Shown: piece after piece, positions 19,001 to 56,366 of the stretch
Layout: the number at the start of each line of letters is the position of its first letter
How positions within the stretch are numbered: position 1 is the first letter of the stretch
Assembly: GCA_028023455.1 (NCBI GenBank)
Contig: JAQFVV010000010.1
Span: forward strand, 7,688,001-7,752,000
Direction of reading: 5' to 3'
DNA from: Epiperipatus broadwayi
Lineage: Eukaryota > Animalia > Onychophora
Length of the DNA stretch: 64,000 nt
Translations under genes and position numbers: made by a program
The notes under the pieces: generated by a model
What the model was told of the DNA's origin: nothing
The model's database searches: none
What the model saw: the letters and a program-made list of their open reading frames with translations, nothing else

Positions 19001-19298
19001 CAATATACAATTCTTTATCATATTTTGAATAGATTTACATTACTGAAGCTTCATAATCATGAACTCAATATTATCACAATCCATGCTTTATTCAATGATT
19101 AATTTCTTTCATTATATTAAAATCCCTGAAAATATATTGTTTAAGAAATTTCTACCTATTCATATTTTCTAAATACCTGTCTACTTTTGTAATGTAGTAG
19201 TAGTTTGCTGCTTATTTGTCTCCCATTCATTTTAAATTTTCATCTGATGACTATAATTTTATCACATTCACTATACCCATATACCAACATCATCATTA

Positions 19299-19634
19299 TC
19301 AACCATTATCAATCCACTGCAGGATGAAGGTCTCTCCAAGTTTAATCCATCTTCTCCGATCTTTAGCTTCTCTTCTCCACATCACCCCTGCACACTTTCT
19401 TATTTCATCCATCCATCTCACATGTGGTCTCTTTCTGGGTCTTTTACAATCTCTTGGAATCCAGTTTAAAATTTTAATTGTCCATCTATTATCATCTCTT
19501 CTAACAATATGTCCAGCCCAACTCCACTTCAATCTTTTAATTTTTTCAATGAGGTCAGTAACACCTGTTTGTTCTCTTACCCATACATTGCGTTTACGAT
19601 CTCTTCTTGTTACTCCCAACATACATCTCTCCAT
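19299..19634 (-). pseudogene. RTE ORF2 C-terminal segment, separated from the RT by a frameshift
   Basis: KRLKWSWAGHIVRRDDNRWT...WIPR..KRPR.RP..RW is the typical RTE C-terminus. It is out of frame with the RT because of a 29-nt deletion near 19720. Confidence 0.9.
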
Positions 19635-19674
19635 ACTTCTTTGAGTGGTCTGAAGTCTCTGAATTGCTCTTCTA

Positions 19675-21216
19675 TTAAGTGTCCAAGTTCCAGATCCATA
19701 AGTAAGAACTGGTAAAACACATAGGCATATTTCCTTTTAGTATCAAGTTATTTCTACCAAAAGCACTCCAACCAAGTTTAATTCTATGATTAATTTCCTC
19801 CATTATGTTTCCATCTGTATTAATAATCTGACCAAGGTATTTGTAACTGTTAACTTCTTCTAATTCATCATAATCAATCTTTATTTTCATATTTTGAGCA
19901 AATCGATTAAACATTACTTTAGTCTTTTTAACATTTATCTTTAGTCCTACTTTCCTACTTTCATCTGATAATTCCTGCAACATTTCCTGCAGATCTGAAG
20001 CATTATTTGCAAAAACAACTACATCATCTGCGAAATCTAAATGACTTAAATAATCACCATTTACTTTCACTTCTTTAGTTTCCCATTTTAATCCACAAAA
20101 TACTTCATGCAGCACTGCTGTAAAAAGTTTTGGAGATATGGAGTCACCTTGTCTTACACCTTTCTCAATGTTGACTTTCCCAGTGTCATTATGTAATCTA
20201 ATTGTTGCTGTTGCATTTTTATAAATATTCTTTAAAATATGACAATATCCTGGATCTATACCTTGATGATCTAATGCTTTAATCACTGAAGAAATGTTTA
20301 TAGAATCAAATGCCTTTTCATAATCTACAAATCCTAAACATAATGGCAACTCATATTCATTTGTTCTTTCTATAACTTCTCTCAATACCTGGATATGATC
20401 TACTGTACTAAAACCACTTTTAAATCCGGCTTGTTCTCTTGGTTGGTGGAAGTCCAATGTTCTCTGTAGACGAGTAGTAATTATCTTGGTAAAAATTTTA
20501 TATAAAACTGATAAAAGGCTGATAGGTCTGTAATTTCTAATATCTTCTTTATCACCTTTTTTAAATATTAATATTATTACTGCATTCTTCCAATCATCCA
20601 GTACATCTTTATCATTTAGACATTTGGTATATAACTTTGCTAAAAAATTTTCTATTTCTTCACCTGCTTCTTTTAATATATCAATTATAATTCCATCATT
20701 ACCTGGAGCTTTTCCTTTCTTCATACATTTAATTGCATGTCTCACTTCTTCATTTAAAATTCTGGGCAATTTGGAAGATGTAATAGATATAGGAGGTACT
20801 TGTTCTTTATTACTATATAATTCTTGATAAAAATCTTCTACCAATTTCATGATGTCATCTCTCCTTTTAGTAATAATTCCATCTTTTTTTCTTATTGCAG
20901 ATATAAATTTCCTACCAATACCAAAATGTTGTTTTACATTCTTAAGACTTTTATTTTCTTCTACAGCTTTCCTTGCTAGTTCACAGTTATACTTTCTTAT
21001 ATCATTTTCAACTCTTTTCCGCACCATTTTACAAAATTCGAGATATTCAATTCTTTTTAATGCATCATTTTTGTATATCTTCATATTCCTTCTTTTCTTC
21101 ATAAATTCTCTAGTCTCAGTAGAAATTTTATTGGTCAATTGCTGTTTCTTTCTACCAGCTATCTTTGTTGCAGTTTTCAAAAGTGTATTAGTTATTTTCA
21201 TATTAATTTCATTCAA
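19675..21216 (-). CDS. RTE reverse transcriptase ORF fragment (513 aa)
   Basis: Open frame with KAPGNDG, IFKKGDKEDIRNYRPISLL, QAGFKSG, FVDYEKAFDS, KGVRQGDSISPKLF, LDFADDVV and YKYLGQ. Confidence 0.93.
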   Translation of the reverse strand: MNEINMKITNTLLKTATKIAGRKKQQLTNKISTETREFMKKRRNMKIYKNDALKRIEYLEFCKMVRKRVENDIRKYNCELARKAVEENKSLKNVKQHFGIGRKFISAIRKKDGIITKRRDDIMKLVEDFYQELYSNKEQVPPISITSSKLPRILNEEVRHAIKCMKKGKAPGNDGIIIDILKEAGEEIENFLAKLYTKCLNDKDVLDDWKNAVIILIFKKGDKEDIRNYRPISLLSVLYKIFTKIITTRLQRTLDFHQPREQAGFKSGFSTVDHIQVLREVIERTNEYELPLCLGFVDYEKAFDSINISSVIKALDHQGIDPGYCHILKNIYKNATATIRLHNDTGKVNIEKGVRQGDSISPKLFTAVLHEVFCGLKWETKEVKVNGDYLSHLDFADDVVVFANNASDLQEMLQELSDESRKVGLKINVKKTKVMFNRFAQNMKIKIDYDELEEVNSYKYLGQIINTDGNIMEEINHRIKLGWSAFGRNNLILKGNMPMCFTSSYLWIWNLDT

Positions 21217-21299
21217 ATCTGAATCATGTTCAAAATCTACTAATACTTGAAACCGATTTGTAAGTTCTAATTTAAATTCATTAGAATGTTTCTGAAGAT

Positions 21300-22075
21300 T
21301 AGGAATATCAACTGTAAATATTGTTTTTCTTAATTTTTGTCTCTCTAGTTTTACATTAACAAGTATCTTACACCTTACTAATCGATGATCACTTCCTGTG
21401 TTAAATTTATTAAGAACATTACAATCTTGAAATATGTTTTCCTGTTAGTCAAAATATAATCCAATTCTGCTGTACCTTCATTTGGATGCTTCCATGTCCA
21501 TTTCCTTTTAACATTTTTCTAAAAAAAAGAATTCATTAACTCCACAAGTCTATGTCCTCTCTCATTTCTATTACCATAACCAAAATTATCCACAACACTT
21601 TCATCTTTCATTTTTTTTTACTAATTCTAGCATTAAAGTCTCCCATAACAATTTTAAAATGGTGTTTACTCTGATCAAAAGCCTTTTGTACATCCATATA
21701 AAAATCTTATACTACTTCATCACTATGAGAACTTGTTGGGGCATAAACCTGAATTATCTGCATTTGGTATCTGCTATTAAGTTGTATAACTAATCTTGCC
21801 ACTCTGTCCGATACACCATCAATCTCCACAATATTGTTCTTCCACTTTTTATTTATAATGAATCCTACTCCACTTGTATTTCCAATATTTGTGCCTTTAT
21901 AATAGAGTATATGTCCACTTTTTAAATCAATTGTCTCTTCACCTTTTCTTCTAACTTCACAAAGTCCAATAATGTCCCATTTAATATAAGAGAGTTCTTC
22001 TTCTAATTCTTGCAATCTTCCTTCACTTGAAAGTGATCTGCAGTTGTAAGTACCTAAATAAAAAGTCGTCATCAA
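21300..22075 (-). pseudogene. RTE AP-endonuclease domain, disrupted
   Basis: ORF 21707-22075 (LGTYNCRSL...WDIIGLCEVRR...IIQVYAPT) ends at a premature TAA. GDFNARI, WTWKHPN, ELDYILTN and GSDHRL follow in shifted frames. Confidence 0.9.
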
Positions 22076-22095
22076 ATGGCAGCCTGGGTCCGCAA

Positions 22096-22200
22096 TCAGG
22101 GGATTCTTAGCACCCTCCGCCTTCGGCCACCAACGCTGCCTTGGTTGGTGACTTTACAGCCTTCTGGGAATAAGGGCCATGCTTTATTTTTGTCTGTCAT
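22096..22200 (-). CDS. Short RTE ORF1 (34 aa, MTDKNKAWPLFPEGCKVTNQGSVGGRRRRVLRIP) overlapping the ORF2 frame
   Basis: ATG at 22200 and TGA ending at 22096. The ORF2 frame (-1) is open from 22153 into the APE start. A short overlapping ORF1 is described for RTE-1-type elements. Confidence 0.5.
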   Translation of the reverse strand: MTDKNKAWPLFPEGCKVTNQGSVGGRRRRVLRIP

Positions 22201-22358
22201 AATTGTATATATGTATTGGGAAAATATTTATCATTTACACAAACATTCATTCTGCCGTATCAGGCACCGAGAAGAAAGACCATGATGTTTCTTGATCTTA
22301 AACTCAGAGGTAAAAAGCCAATAAACTCACCACGCTGGCTAATGCGTGTTGGTGAGCA

Positions 22359-22527
22359 GCCCATCCATGTTCGTATACTATATGAATAATCACATAGTAA
22401 TAACAGCTGCAACGACAAGAACGTATGGAGTGGACATTAGGAATTTGCCCTGCTCGGTTCCTTTAAGGCCTCCAAGAGGAATCAAAGGGTCTCCTTTCAG
22501 TTAATAGCAAAACTCCTTTCTGCAGCC
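22359..22527 (-). ncRNA. HDV-like (CPEB3-type) self-cleaving ribozyme
   Basis: P1 GGCUGCA/UGCAGCU with G1.U wobble. P2 GUCCA-C-UCCAU/AUGGAUGGGC. P3 ACG/CGU. L3 UUCUUGU. J1/4 GU. P4 UACUAUGUGA-UUAU-UCAUAUAGUA. J4/2 CGAAC with the catalytic C at 22373. The 85-nt J1/2 has its own stem. Confidence 0.9.
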
Positions 22528-22917
22528 TACCCATATATAATGACTATTAAAAATAATCATTATATAAAATAAATTTAAAAACCTGCAAATTGAAGACAAT
22601 ATGAATATTCTTCATTTACCAAGTTATTACATATATATTTAAAAGGAATTACTTTTTGTAAAATACTCTGCCTGCTTCCAAATTTATAGCATTTTACAAC
22701 TTTTTGCAGGTATGACTTAATTCTTTAAAATTTGTTATATTTATTGTGATAAAAAGATTTTGTTTAAAATATCTATCAATGCACACTAACATTATAATAT
22801 ATAATTATTATTTCAATTCTTTAACCATATGAGTATTTGGTTGTAGTTTTTATGAATAGCAAATATTTCTTTGTTAGATAAAACTTTTTAACACAACTAC
22901 CCCTAACAAATAAATAT

Positions 22918-24060
22918 AAGAACAAATGAATATGAGTTGCCATTATGCTTTAGATTTGTAGATTATGAAAAGGCATTTGATTCTATAAACATTTCTTCAG
23001 TGATTAAAGCATTGGATCAAGGTATAGATCCAGGATATTGTCATATTTTAAAGAATATTTATAAAAATGCAACAGCAACAATTAGATTACATAATGATAC
23101 TATGAAAGTCAACATTGAGAAGGGTGTAAGACAGGGTGACTCCATATCTCCAAAACTTTTTACAGCAGTGCTGCAAGAAGTATTTTGTGGATTAAAATGA
23201 GAAGCTAAAGGCATGAAAGTAAATGGAGATTATTTAAGTCATTTAGATTTTGCAGATGATGTAGTTGTTTTTGCAAATAATGCTTTAGAGCTACAGGTAG
23301 TGTTGCAGGAGTTATCAGATGAAAGTAGGACTAAAGATAAATGTTAAAAAGACTAAAGTAATGTTTAATGATATGAAAATAAAGATTGATTATGATGAGT
23401 TAGAAAAAGTTAACAGTTACAAATACCTTGGACAGATTATTCTGACAGATTGACTATGATGAGTTAGAAAAAGTTAACAGTTACAAATACCTTAGTCAGA
23501 TTATTAAGACAGATTGAAACATAATGAATGAAATTAATCATAGAATTAAACTTGGTTGGAGTGCTTTTGGTAGAAATAATTTGACATTAAAAGGAAATAT
23601 GCCTATGTATTTGAAAAGGAAAGTTTTTCATAAATGTGTTTTACCAGTTCTTATTTATGTATCTGAGACTTGGCCACTTAATAGGAGCACAATATAGAGA
23701 CTTCAGACCACTCAAAGAATTATGGAGATGCATGTTGGGAGTAACAAACAGATTGAAAAAGCAATATATGGGTAAAAGAACAAACAGGTGTTACTGACCT
23801 CATTGAAAAAAATAAAAGACTGAAGTGGAGTTGGGCTGGACATATTGCTAGAAAAGATGATAATAGATGGACAATTGAAATCTTAAAGTGGATTCCAAGA
23901 GATTATAAAAGATCCAGAAAGAGACCACATGTGAGATGGATGGATGAAATAAGAAAGTGTGCAGGGGTGATATGGAGAAGAGAAGCTGAAGATAGGAGAA
24001 GATAGATTGAACTTGGAGAGACCTTCATCCTGCAGTGGACTGATAATGGTTGATGATGAT
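22918..24060 (+). mobile_element. 5'-truncated second copy of the same RTE, inverted relative to copy 1
   Basis: Near-identical to the reverse complement of 19284-20365 (FVDYEKAFDS...GVRQGDSISP; same ...CCTGCAGTGG.(C/T)GATAATGGTTGATGATGAT end). It has internal stops and deletions. Confidence 0.95.
23383..23517 (+). repeat. 64-bp tandem duplication inside RTE copy 2
   Basis: AGATTGA(T/C)TATGATGAGTTAGAAAAAGTTAACAGTTACAAATACCTT repeats at 23383 and 23447. A third AGATTGA is at 23511. Confidence 0.9.
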
Positions 24061-51006: not shown

Positions 51007-51113
51007 TTTTTTTTAAGTGTCATAGCATTGGCCGGGACACGAACCCGCAACCCGGGCAACTGCCTGCAAGTGCAAGGCAGTCGCGCTGACCCTCTCGACC
51101 ACCAATGCAAGAT
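51007..51113 (-). mobile_element. tRNA-Gly-derived short SINE with A-tail and 15-bp TSD
   Basis: GCATTGG...CCAATGC acceptor stem, CTGCC/GGCAG stem and GGGTTCGTGTCCC T-arm, followed by TATGACACTT and an A-run. TSD ACCTATTTATGTTTT at 50992-51006 and 51114-51128. Confidence 0.88.
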
Positions 51114-53620: not shown

Positions 53621-53669
53621 CAAATGACTGATTATATTACATGCATGAAATTTGCAGAATAAAAAAACT

Positions 53670-55797
53670 AAATAGAAATAAATATGGAAACATTCAAACT
53701 AAAATATAGCAGAATTGGATTATATTTTGACTAACTGAATGTATTGTTCTTAATTGATTCAAAACAGAAAGTAACTAATAATTACTGAAGATAAGATACA
53801 TATGTTATTGCAAATTAGAGACAAAACTATTATAAAAGACAATTTACAGAAACAGAAAGATTGTATATTATAAATTCTTTCTTTGAGAAAAATGCTGAAT
53901 GGAAATGAACATGGAAATATTCAAAACAAAAATGTAACAGAATTGGATTATATTTTGATTAATATATTGTAATGTTCTTAATAAATTCAAATTAAAGTAA
54001 CTACTGGTCAGTGAGATATAAGATACCTATGTTAAAGCAAACTAAAACAAAATTTTTAGAAAAAAGACAGTAATAATATTTGATATTCTTAGCCTTCAGA
54101 AACATTTCAATGAATTTAAATTAGACAAATATTAATAGACTTTGAAAATGGGTTCAAATTTAAAAATCAATAAGATAACTGATATTCTACTAAGAATGAC
54201 AACAAAAATAAATGGTGCAAAAAAAAAAAGGCCACTCACAGTAAATTTTCAATTGAGATAAAATAGTGTATGAAAAAAAAAGGAAAAATACAAAAAATAT
54301 TTGAAACTGATTCAATAAGAAAAATAAAATATTTGGAGTTCTGTAAAGTGGCAAGGAATAAAATAAGTTTCAAAAGTATAAGAATGTGTGGTATTAGGAA
54401 AAAAAGTTATTTCAGCAATAAAAAAAAAAAATAATAATATAAAATGTAAAAACCCAAAATATTATAAATGGAGTAAGACATATAGTTAAATCCAGGAAGA
54501 AATTCCAAAAAATGATAGAATTATTAATATTTTAAAAGCAGACAAGAAATAAAAAAAAATGTTGGTAAAATTATATACCAAAAGTCTAAATAATAAAGAT
54601 GTATTAGATGACTGGAAAATTACAATAGTAATATTGATATTTAAAAAAGAAGATAGAAAGATATTAGGAATTACAGATCTAATGATTGTTTATCAGTTCT
54701 ACATGAAATTTTTACCAAGATAATTACAACTCATCTACAGTAAATATTGGATTCAAATCAACTAAAAAAACAGAATTTGTTTAAAAGTGATTTACCATGG
54801 CTTAAATCCAAGTATTGAAAAAAAAAAAAACTAATAAATATGAATTGCCATTGTGTTTTGAATTTATAGATTATGAAAAGGAGCATTTCTACAGTGATTA
54901 AAGTTTTGATCATCAAAATGTAAACCAAGGATATTGCCATATTCTAAAAAATATCAAATGTAGCAGCATTAACTAGATTATATAGTGATATTAAGATTAA
55001 CAATGAAAAGAATGTAGTAATTCCATGTACAAATTTTTTTATAGCAATTTTACAAGAAATATTTTGCTGATTAAAATGGAAAGCTAAGAAGTTAAAAGTA
55101 AATTGAAATTATTTAAATCATCTAGATTTTGCAGATGATGTGGTTGTTTTTGCAAATAATGCTTTAGAGCTTCAGAGTTATCAGATGAAAATAAATTAAG
55201 ATTAAAAATTAATGCTAAAAAGATTCAAGTCAAGTTCATTGGCTTTTCTCAGAAATATAAAATAAAGATTGATAATGATAAATTAGAGGTTAACAACTAC
55301 CAAGTATCTTGATCAGATTATTAATAATACAGATGGAAACAAAATAGACGAAATTAGCTATAGAATTAAACTTGAATAGAGTGTTTTTGATAAAAATAAA
55401 TACTAAAAGAAAATATAACTATTTGAAGAAAAAAAACAAGGTTGTAACCTATTCATTCTTATACACTGAAAGATGTATGGAAAGAGATATGTTGGGAGTA
55501 ATAAAAGGGATTGAAAGTAAAATATTTTGCCGAGGGAACAAATAGTTACCAATAATATCAATGAAAAAATTATGAGACTGAAACAGAGCTAGGTTAGGAA
55601 TGTTGCTAGAAGAAATGATAACAGATGGACAGCTGAAGTCTTAACTTGGATCCCAAGAGATTGGATTGATCTAGAAAGAGACCACATGTGAGATGGATTA
55701 ATGAATCAGTAAGTTTGTTGATGCAATGTGAAGAACAAAGAAACTGAATTAAACTTAAGAGACTTTCACCCTGCAATAAATTGATAATAGTTGAAAA
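53670..55797 (+). mobile_element. Third, much older copy of the same RTE family
   Basis: GCAGAATTGGATTATATTTTGACTAAC (APE, duplicated at ~53710 and ~53938), CATCTAGATTTTGCAGATGATGTGGTTGTTTTTGC (FADD), AAGAGACCACATGTGAGATGG and the 3' end ...CCTGCAATAAATTGATAATAGTTGA. Confidence 0.85.
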
Positions 55798-56294
55798 TAA
55801 TTAATTACATGCATGTTTAAAACATTTTACAATGAGTATAATAATTAGGTATATTTGCCATATACTACTATAATATATTCATATACGCACTTATTAAGAA
55901 AATATATTTCATCTATTATTTTTTCAAGTTAATCACATTTTGTATATATTTACAATAATATTTATATAAAATACTGAGGTTAGAATTCCCGCCAGGAAAG
56001 AATAGAAAAAGATCACATTTAATAAATGATAATTATATTACATTTTTCACACTTTCAAATAAAGTGAATAAAATATGCTTTATATACTATAAAATTCTAG
56101 TTAATTCTGATTTGAAATTAGTGATGTTTAGAGTTTGCCACAACCAATAAAATAATTCTGAAATTAGTTGTATGAAACTTGTATTATCACATTTATAATT
56201 AGAAGTCAACTATTATATAAATTTTTACTTCATAATGAGATTAAACTTAAATTATATTATATTTCCATGTTATTCTTTTCCCCAACAATTACAA

Positions 56295-56366
56295 GCATTG
56301 GTGACTTAGTGGTCATCATAGCTGCCTTCCAAGCAGCTGGCCCGGGTTTGCTTCCCGGTCAACGCA
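56295..56366 (+). pseudogene. tRNA-Gly(TCC) pseudogene or SINE head
   Basis: 72 nt with the TCC anticodon in CTGCC-TTCCAAG-CAG and about 11 differences from the canonical animal tRNA-Gly(TCC) as I recall it. It has an A.C mismatch in the acceptor stem, a TTTG T-loop in place of TTCG, and a TTTGACA tail. Confidence 0.8.

Follow-up and report, generated by a model that had tools for sequence, protein, structure and literature searches.

Where does the RNA of a mobile element begin if the element, as reported for RTE-clade retrotransposons, is not known to carry its own promoter (PMC6765202)? The question is raised by a full-length RTE insertion on the minus strand of a 64,000-nt stretch of the genome of Epiperipatus broadwayi (Onychophora; contig JAQFVV010000010.1, positions 7,688,001 to 7,752,000), hereafter called the window. 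The first 169 nt of this element very probably encode an HDV-like self-cleaving ribozyme of the CPEB3/drz-Agam-2 type, acting by the mechanism outlined below. This type is distinguished by a single C-G pair in P1.1 together with a large structured J1/2 domain.

Boundaries and coding state of the element

The first base of the element is fixed by its target site duplication (TSD), the exact 10-bp repeat TATATGGGTA. Since the bases flanking the two TSD copies are unlike each other on both sides, the element is exactly 22527 to 19284, and G22527 (G1) is its first base (Table 1). The first-pass annotation had placed G1 directly beside the TSD and had called the ORF dead, and both statements hold: the 5' TSD copy adjoins G1, and the frame map displays several frameshifts and stops in the ORF. 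The coding content of the element is this single ORF, comprising an N-terminal APE endonuclease and a reverse transcriptase; the Pfam search found RVT_1, along with a sub-threshold Exo_endo_phos match (22.5 bits at a cut-off of 24.5).

The length of ~3.2 kb, one APE+RT ORF, a short 3' UTR ending in a tandem repeat, and the TSD are all typical of the RTE clade, to which the element is assigned by its domains, closest proteins, and layout. Its closest proteins are full-length APE+RT ORFs of RTEs residing on ~3.3-kb metagenomic contigs (54–57% identity), and its relatives include a Bombyx “endonuclease-reverse transcriptase”. A TGA stop followed immediately by (GAT)n also terminates the relatives L001, L002, L004, L006, L272, L273, and L275. 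Most RTEs ending in this way have (AT)n on one or both flanks, which suggests a target preference for (TA) repeats.

The window harbors other copies of related elements as well. One copy of this RTE, truncated at its 5' end (22918–24060, plus strand; the 3' 1.1 kb, 85% identity), lies in the opposite orientation ~390 bp from the 5' end of the full-length element, and an older relative, roughly 70% identical, occupies 53661–55801 of the plus strand.

Table 1. Coordinates of the RTE element, its predicted 5' ribozyme, the adjacent hairpin, and predicted tRNAs (window positions unless a relative is named)
Feature	Position	Strand	Remarks
Full-length RTE-clade non-LTR retrotransposon, dead	19284..22527	-	3244 bp; 10-bp TSD, frame map, Pfam
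TSD, 5' copy TATATGGGTA	22528..22537	-	exact 10-bp repeat, directly adjoins G1
TSD, 3' copy TATATGGGTA	19274..19283	-	exact 10-bp repeat
Very short 3' UTR with degenerate (GAT)n tail	19284..19298	-	straight after the TGA stop, as in relatives
HDV-like self-cleaving ribozyme, nested double pseudoknot (predicted)	22359..22527	-	169 nt; predicted cut 5' of G22527
P1, 5' strand GGCUGCA	22521..22527	-	pairs with 22411–22405; covaries across relatives
P1, 3' strand UGCAGCU	22405..22411	-	script annotation
J1/2 peripheral domain	22436..22520	-	85 nt, P1.2-type elongated hairpin; folds and RNAalifold
P2, 5' strand GUCCA[C]UCCAU	22425..22435	-	10 bp with 22368–22359, one bulge
P2, 3' strand AUGGAUGGGC	22359..22368	-	script annotation
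P3 ACG/CGU enclosing L3	22412..22424	-	ACG 22424–22422, CGU 22414–22412
L3 UUCUUGU	22415..22421	-	between the P3 strands
J1/4 GU	22403..22404	-	its G forms P1.1 with the third base of L3, a C
P4 hairpin	22374..22402	-	29 nt; 10-bp stem capped by UUAU; two more outer pairs, separated by a bulged U
J4/2 CGAAC	22369..22373	-	putative catalytic C at 22373
“AAC” hairpin CUCACC-AAC-(A)CGC...GCG(U)-GGUGAG	22326..22356	-	conserved; 2 nt downstream of the ribozyme
“AAC” hairpin in relatives	L001 229–264; L002 247–282; L003 2912–2947; L004 375–410; L005 219–254; L006 543–578; L007 1964–1999; L246 246–281; L273 248–283; L274 535–570; L275 215–250		
tRNA-Cys(GCA), prediction	51024–51108	-	
tRNA-Gly(TCC), prediction	56295–56366	+	

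The double pseudoknot, its homologs, and its covariation

Starting from G1, the parts of a nested double pseudoknot follow each other along the minus strand in the order P1-J1/2-P2-P3-L3-P3'-P1'-J1/4-P4-J4/2-P2'. The script annotation found this order complete and recovered every ribozyme part listed in the first-pass annotation at its place. P1 consists of 7 bp, with G22527 pairing with U22405 as the G1.U wobble, and the closing stem of J1/2, AGGAGUUU[U]GC/GCAAAUUCCU, has 10 bp and one bulged U. A 3-bp P3 encloses an L3 of ~7 nt with U in the first and G in the sixth position; P1.1, formed between L3 and J1/4, is the single C-G pair C22419-G22404 plus U.U. J4/2 carries the catalytic C and the A-A pair of residues equivalent to C75, A77, and A78 of HDV. 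The putative ribozyme family thereby agrees with the HDV-like class in every structural feature that can be checked from sequence.

A descriptor match as such is not a strong argument in DNA of this composition. The loose HDV descriptor, which allowed J1/2 of up to 120 nt, matched the 64-kb window once, at the ribozyme site, and dinucleotide-shuffled windows yielded ~0.6 matches each (at least one match in 24 of 60; 23 matches in 40 shuffles) as a consequence of the AT-rich base composition (74% A+T) and the long J1/2 allowed. About one in eight shuffled windows had matches with a P2 of at least 8 bp. The P4 scoring function undercounted, giving the real P4 only 3, so the combined criterion was not usable on the shuffles. 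At the same time, 0.6 chance matches per 128,000 strand positions correspond to a probability of ~5e-6 that a match would fall by chance on the exact TSD-defined base and on the correct strand. The motif match by itself is not beyond chance in this AT-rich window; its position, homology, and covariation are.

Covariance models were searched as suggested in the first-pass annotation (HDV-like, CPEB3). The drz-agam-2-2 model of Rfam (RF01788), the only ribozyme family matched at relaxed thresholds, gave a weak full-length match at 22360–22517 (model positions 1–191, E=0.93), scoring 11.4 bits against a gathering threshold of 38. The gathering-level Rfam scan of the window returned nothing for the ribozyme region, a tRNA being the sole family found, and neither HDV_ribozyme nor CPEB3_ribozyme (RF00622) appeared at E<=10 in the scan of a 301-nt segment. 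The absence of HDV and CPEB3 matches is expected, since the 85-nt J1/2 is an insert with respect to these models and pseudoknots are not modeled. In ten homologous loci, the E-value scan found no HDV-type families, with L001 and L002 giving no drz-agam-2-2 match at E<=1.

More can be learned from the two closest relatives, the metagenomic RTEs L001 (57% amino acid identity) and L002 (54%). Their 5' ends begin with GG(G)CUGC directly after the flanking (AT)n and bear a homologous structure starting within one base of the junction. Used as nhmmer queries, their 5' UTRs each gave a single match in the window, 22526–22333 of the minus strand (E=1.1e-13 and 9.6e-12, respectively), and L002 satisfied even the strict HDV descriptor. 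Among the window element, L001, and L002, nucleotide identity was ~65% in the non-coding 5' UTR, 62–64% in the ORF, and 41–46% at third codon positions. The 5' UTR is thus as conserved as the ORF and far more so than the third positions, which shows selection on the RNA.

The peripheral part of the fold is retained in these three elements, the only available lineages of the long-J1/2 type. Independent MFE folds of their J1/2 domains have the same elongated-hairpin architecture, and RNAalifold recovered 24 common pairs, 10 of them with compensatory double changes, while the closing stems have nearly no sequence in common. The internal-loop sequences AAC...GRAGAC and GGAAYCRA of J1/2 are invariant in the three lineages, whereas the stems covary. 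Three pairs of P2 are compensatory in L001 and L002. Both relatives also possess the G1.U wobble and the same CGAAC in J4/2. L001 deviates in having A.G within P3 and 6 bp in P1, and its P4 differs in sequence yet also forms a stem. In L002 (217–245), P4 has shrunk to 7 nt (UUUAAGA) with the rest of the fold retained, making it a natural near-P4-less variant.

The core was compared over a set of six elements comprising the same three and the more distant L005, L273, and L275. In P1, P2, P3, and P1.1, 94% of the cells were paired vs. 39–55% in slid controls with the partner shifted by 1–3 nt, in a table which was annotated to fit the fold and therefore leans towards it, and in which L273 and L275 are near-duplicates. 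MAFFT columns were structurally inconsistent in the variable stems, so per-sequence annotation with slid controls was used instead. Changes on both sides were recorded in 15 of the 17 core pairs, including the P1 pseudoknot and P1.1, in addition to the 10 compensatory pairs of J1/2. The P1 pseudoknot is made by three unrelated sequences among the six elements, and P1.1 appears as C-G, as G-C, or as A-U plus C-G. Fixed in all six are U1 and G6 of L3 (matching U20 and G25 of HDV) and the C and A-A of J4/2, which reads CGAA or CAAAU in the distant relatives.

The distant elements feature an HDV-like layout of another design, likewise situated right after (AT)n-rich flanking DNA (L005 88–220, L273 109–250, L275 77–217). 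In these putative ribozymes, J1/2 takes 4–11 nt and P4 71–77 nt with a common CAGGUUYAACCAU motif; P1 opens with C1-G in place of the usual G.U, and P1.1 covaries. Neither strict nor relaxed descriptors found the HDV motif in two psyllid loci (L003 and L007) or in the loci L004, L006, L272, L274, and L246, where the 5' ends either differ or lie beyond the fetched sequence.

Searches for further representatives were carried out in metagenomic, genomic, and viral contig collections. A 14-base J4/2-P2' pattern lacked specificity, with chance matches at ~240 loci that belonged for the most part to bacteria or viruses; the lone descriptor match among them was rejected as a chance one as well. A 27-base gapped pattern had no match in genome_contigs or viral_contigs. 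The protein-guided locus search yielded no additional long-J1/2 ribozyme in genome_contigs and none in viral_contigs. It is worth mentioning that the genome_contigs loci L246–L270 are eukaryotic RTE sequences inside assemblies labeled as bacterial MAGs, e.g., about nine RTE-bearing contigs in one Metamycoplasmataceae MAG and others in bins labeled Breoghania, Fibrobacter, and Citrobacter freundii. Very likely, these represent contamination of the bins by host or other eukaryotic DNA.

Genomic copies, the proposed mechanism, and the state of the window copy

Assembled contigs of the DNA run X1 and of three RNA-labeled runs were aligned to positions 22200–22700. As many as 35,603 contigs of X1 matched this 500-nt stretch, so the family is present in a very high number of copies. 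The summed depth amounts to millions up to ~22527 and drops more than 1000-fold just beyond it. The consensus of the contig ends runs ...CTGCAGCC (...CTCCTTTCTGCAGCC) and then gives way to a non-consensus AT-rich flank. Hence, the other copies likewise begin at GGCTGCAG, the common start that the first-pass annotation had proposed to look for and that is evident here from both the contig depth and the end consensus. Near-identical RTE 5' ends were also encountered in runs labeled as several other organisms; one related organism has a fixed difference at 22473, within a hairpin loop.

A precise common start is what the proposed mechanism would produce. The RTE would be transcribed as a part of a longer upstream transcript, in which the J1/2 (P1.2) hairpin draws P1 and P2 together and allows the double pseudoknot to form. 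The J4/2 cytosine, C22373, would then catalyze scission 5' of G1, releasing an RNA with a 5'-OH that starts at the first base of the element. This RNA would be translated, and its cap-independent initiation may be aided by the ribozyme fold, perhaps along with the conserved hairpin next to it. Finally, the RNA would be copied into (TA)-rich targets via target-primed reverse transcription. Copying of an RNA that begins at G1 would leave full-length copies beginning exactly at G1, beside the TSD. The ribozyme would thus explain how a very abundant RTE family obtains a precise 5' end in spite of lacking a promoter of its own.

Copies differ from each other nearly exclusively by paired C>T/G>A changes at the CpGs 22333/4, 22345/6, 22372/3, 22413/4, and 22455/6. 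Such changes reflect neutral, methylation-driven decay of the inserted copies of a high-copy family. The catalytic C22373 itself belongs to one of these CpGs, and ~34% of the genomic depth lacks the C. The window copy has retained it and agrees with the majority of the copies wherever the ribozyme varies, save for 22413 (P3'), where the copies are evenly split. The fold had been described as undamaged in the first-pass annotation. This remains correct for the core residues and helices and less so for the closing stem of J1/2, in which one extra U at 22509, as compared with the majority of the copies, bulges from the otherwise perfect 10 bp.

These data bear on whether the fold, being the ribozyme of the family, is in the window copy an inert relic, untranscribed on the minus strand or hindered in folding by the extra U or the AT-rich flank. 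Such a state of the copy is conceivable, though we consider it rather unlikely. It would be in line with the dead ORF, the neutral CpG loss among the genomic copies, and the 1-nt insertion, the more so as the activity of large HDV-like ribozymes depends on the stability of the J1/2 stem (PMC4908430). Moreover, the contigs of the three RNA-labeled runs over 22200–22700 gave no evidence for transcription of the unique flank of the locus or for a minus-strand transcript. Contigs of these runs do extend past G1 into flanking sequence, so these runs contain either RNA that was not cleaved or DNA contamination. On the other hand, all core residues and helices of the window copy are intact, its letters are otherwise those of the majority bar the split at 22413, and folding is unlikely to be lost through a single bulge among the 10 bp of the stem. 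P2, P4, and the J1/2 domain also persist in the nested MFE fold (z-score -2.5), in which the 5' strand of P1 stays unpaired and free. The copy is a dead insertion whose intact core would probably still cut a minus-strand transcript crossing it; cleavage of a host transcript, as envisaged in the first-pass annotation, is plausible.

A different objection concerns the family as a whole: the conserved 5' UTR structure could be non-catalytic, binding the RTE protein or working in an IRES-like manner, with the 5' end set by a transcription start site. HDV-like folds of R2 and L1Tc have indeed been proposed to be IRES-like elements and protein-binding sites as well (PMC6765202), and the sequence conservation of the J1/2 internal loops and of the downstream hairpin goes beyond the needs of cleavage. 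However, the residues required solely for catalysis (G1.U, the C and A-A of J4/2, the U and G of L3) are conserved despite wholly different helix sequences, and P1 engages the very first bases of the element, a signature of a cleavage-site helix. Those RTE ribozymes of the class that have been assayed cut at the 5' junction of the element, according to PMC3774820 (citing Ruminski 2011). All this renders a purely structural role improbable. The view that low-complexity AT-rich DNA here resembles the HDV descriptor by chance is favored by the frequency of loose matches in shuffled windows, also of those with a longer P2, but it is effectively refuted by the exact coincidence with the TSD-defined first base, the homologous structure in independent RTEs, and the covariation backing the fold.

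A possible wider 5' module and known ribozymes

The self-cleaving ribozyme predicted here seems to have a conserved neighbor. The “AAC” hairpin located next to it (Table 1) is composed of a 6-bp outer stem, a conserved AAC bulge on the 5' side, an inner CGC/GCG stem, and a loop of 8–9 nt. Over 13 RTE 5' UTRs, 86% of its cells pair vs. 39–54% in slid controls; 7 of the 10 pairs change on both sides, and the observed score was reached in none of 500 shuffles. The hairpin is present also in the loci in which the HDV motif was not found, the psyllid copies included. In L246, the RTE contig binned in the Breoghania MAG, a tRNA (58–130; 30.8 bits, above the Rfam gathering threshold) lies ~115 nt upstream of the hairpin, in the place taken by the ribozyme in other relatives. 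This tRNA may serve as another kind of module for 5' processing or as a promoter module, unless it is just a neighboring gene.

The occurrence of the hairpin without an HDV motif, the different ribozyme layouts, and the tRNA in the ribozyme position together suggest a modular 5' UTR. Tentatively, the ribozyme may belong to a larger conserved 5' RNA module (J1/2 plus the “AAC” hairpin), an as yet undescribed platform of this RTE clade for protein binding or translation initiation, with a swappable 5'-processing device in front of it. The devices exchanged would be the long-J1/2 HDV type, the long-P4 C1-G type, and possibly a tRNA.

For the genome, the family means very many potential self-cleaving sites, and where sense copies with an intact core lie in introns, they could cut the pre-mRNAs of the host. 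For the HDV-like class, it adds natural sequence variation, with a P1.2 domain that covaries well and a relative nearly devoid of P4, in a family currently undetected by Rfam. The known picture of RTE 5' processing is left unchanged. The class has been described since 2009–2011, and the family extends it without constituting a new kind. The reports of HDV-like ribozymes at the 5' ends of RTEs go back to Webb 2009 and Ruminski 2011, as cited in PMC6765202 and PMC3774820, in agreement with the first-pass annotation, which had regarded them as established. Its suggestion that the long J1/2 may be undescribed has to be abandoned: the structured J1/2 corresponds to the P1.2 “pinch” domain analyzed in drz-Agam-2-1 (PMC4908430, Webb 2016), and drz-agam-2-2 has the same layout.

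The closest known counterpart is the drz-Agam-2 family from RTEs of Anopheles gambiae (RF01788), which likewise forms an HDV-type double pseudoknot at the 5' ends of its elements and whose large, structured J1/2 (P1.2) likewise sits on a stable closing stem. The two have the P3 sequence ACG/CGU in common, and L3 is UYCUYGU-like, with UCCUCGU in the Rfam consensus vs. UUCUUGU in the window. The differences include CUAAA in J4/2 of the drz-agam-2-2 consensus vs. CGAAC in the window, a long P4 vs. one of 29 nt, and the host, here a different animal with a very AT-rich genome.

The core of the CPEB3 ribozyme comprises a 7-bp P1 with G1.U, L3 of the form UUCNNGU, J4/2 CGAAN, and J1/4 GU, which gives rise to one C-G P1.1 pair plus U.U. 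The core arrangement of the predicted window ribozyme is the same as in this mammalian ribozyme (RF00622). The two differ in J1/2, which is 1 nt long in CPEB3 and 85 nt long in the window, and in the location, a conserved host intron in the former and a mobile element in the latter.

Among other retrotransposons, the HDV-like ribozymes at the 5' ends of R2 and L1Tc likewise process a co-transcript to set the 5' end of the element, and their folds may also serve translation initiation or protein binding (PMC6765202, PMC3774820). These elements belong to LINE clades other than RTE. R2 occupies a specific site in 28S rDNA, and its ribozyme often cuts at a point upstream of the junction, while the cut predicted for the window element falls exactly at the junction, in a (TA)-rich target. 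Within the RTE clade, Perere-3 of Schistosoma mansoni also relies on a 5' self-cleaving ribozyme for 5' processing; in that case, it is a variant of twister, a class unrelated to the HDV-like one (PMC8501958).
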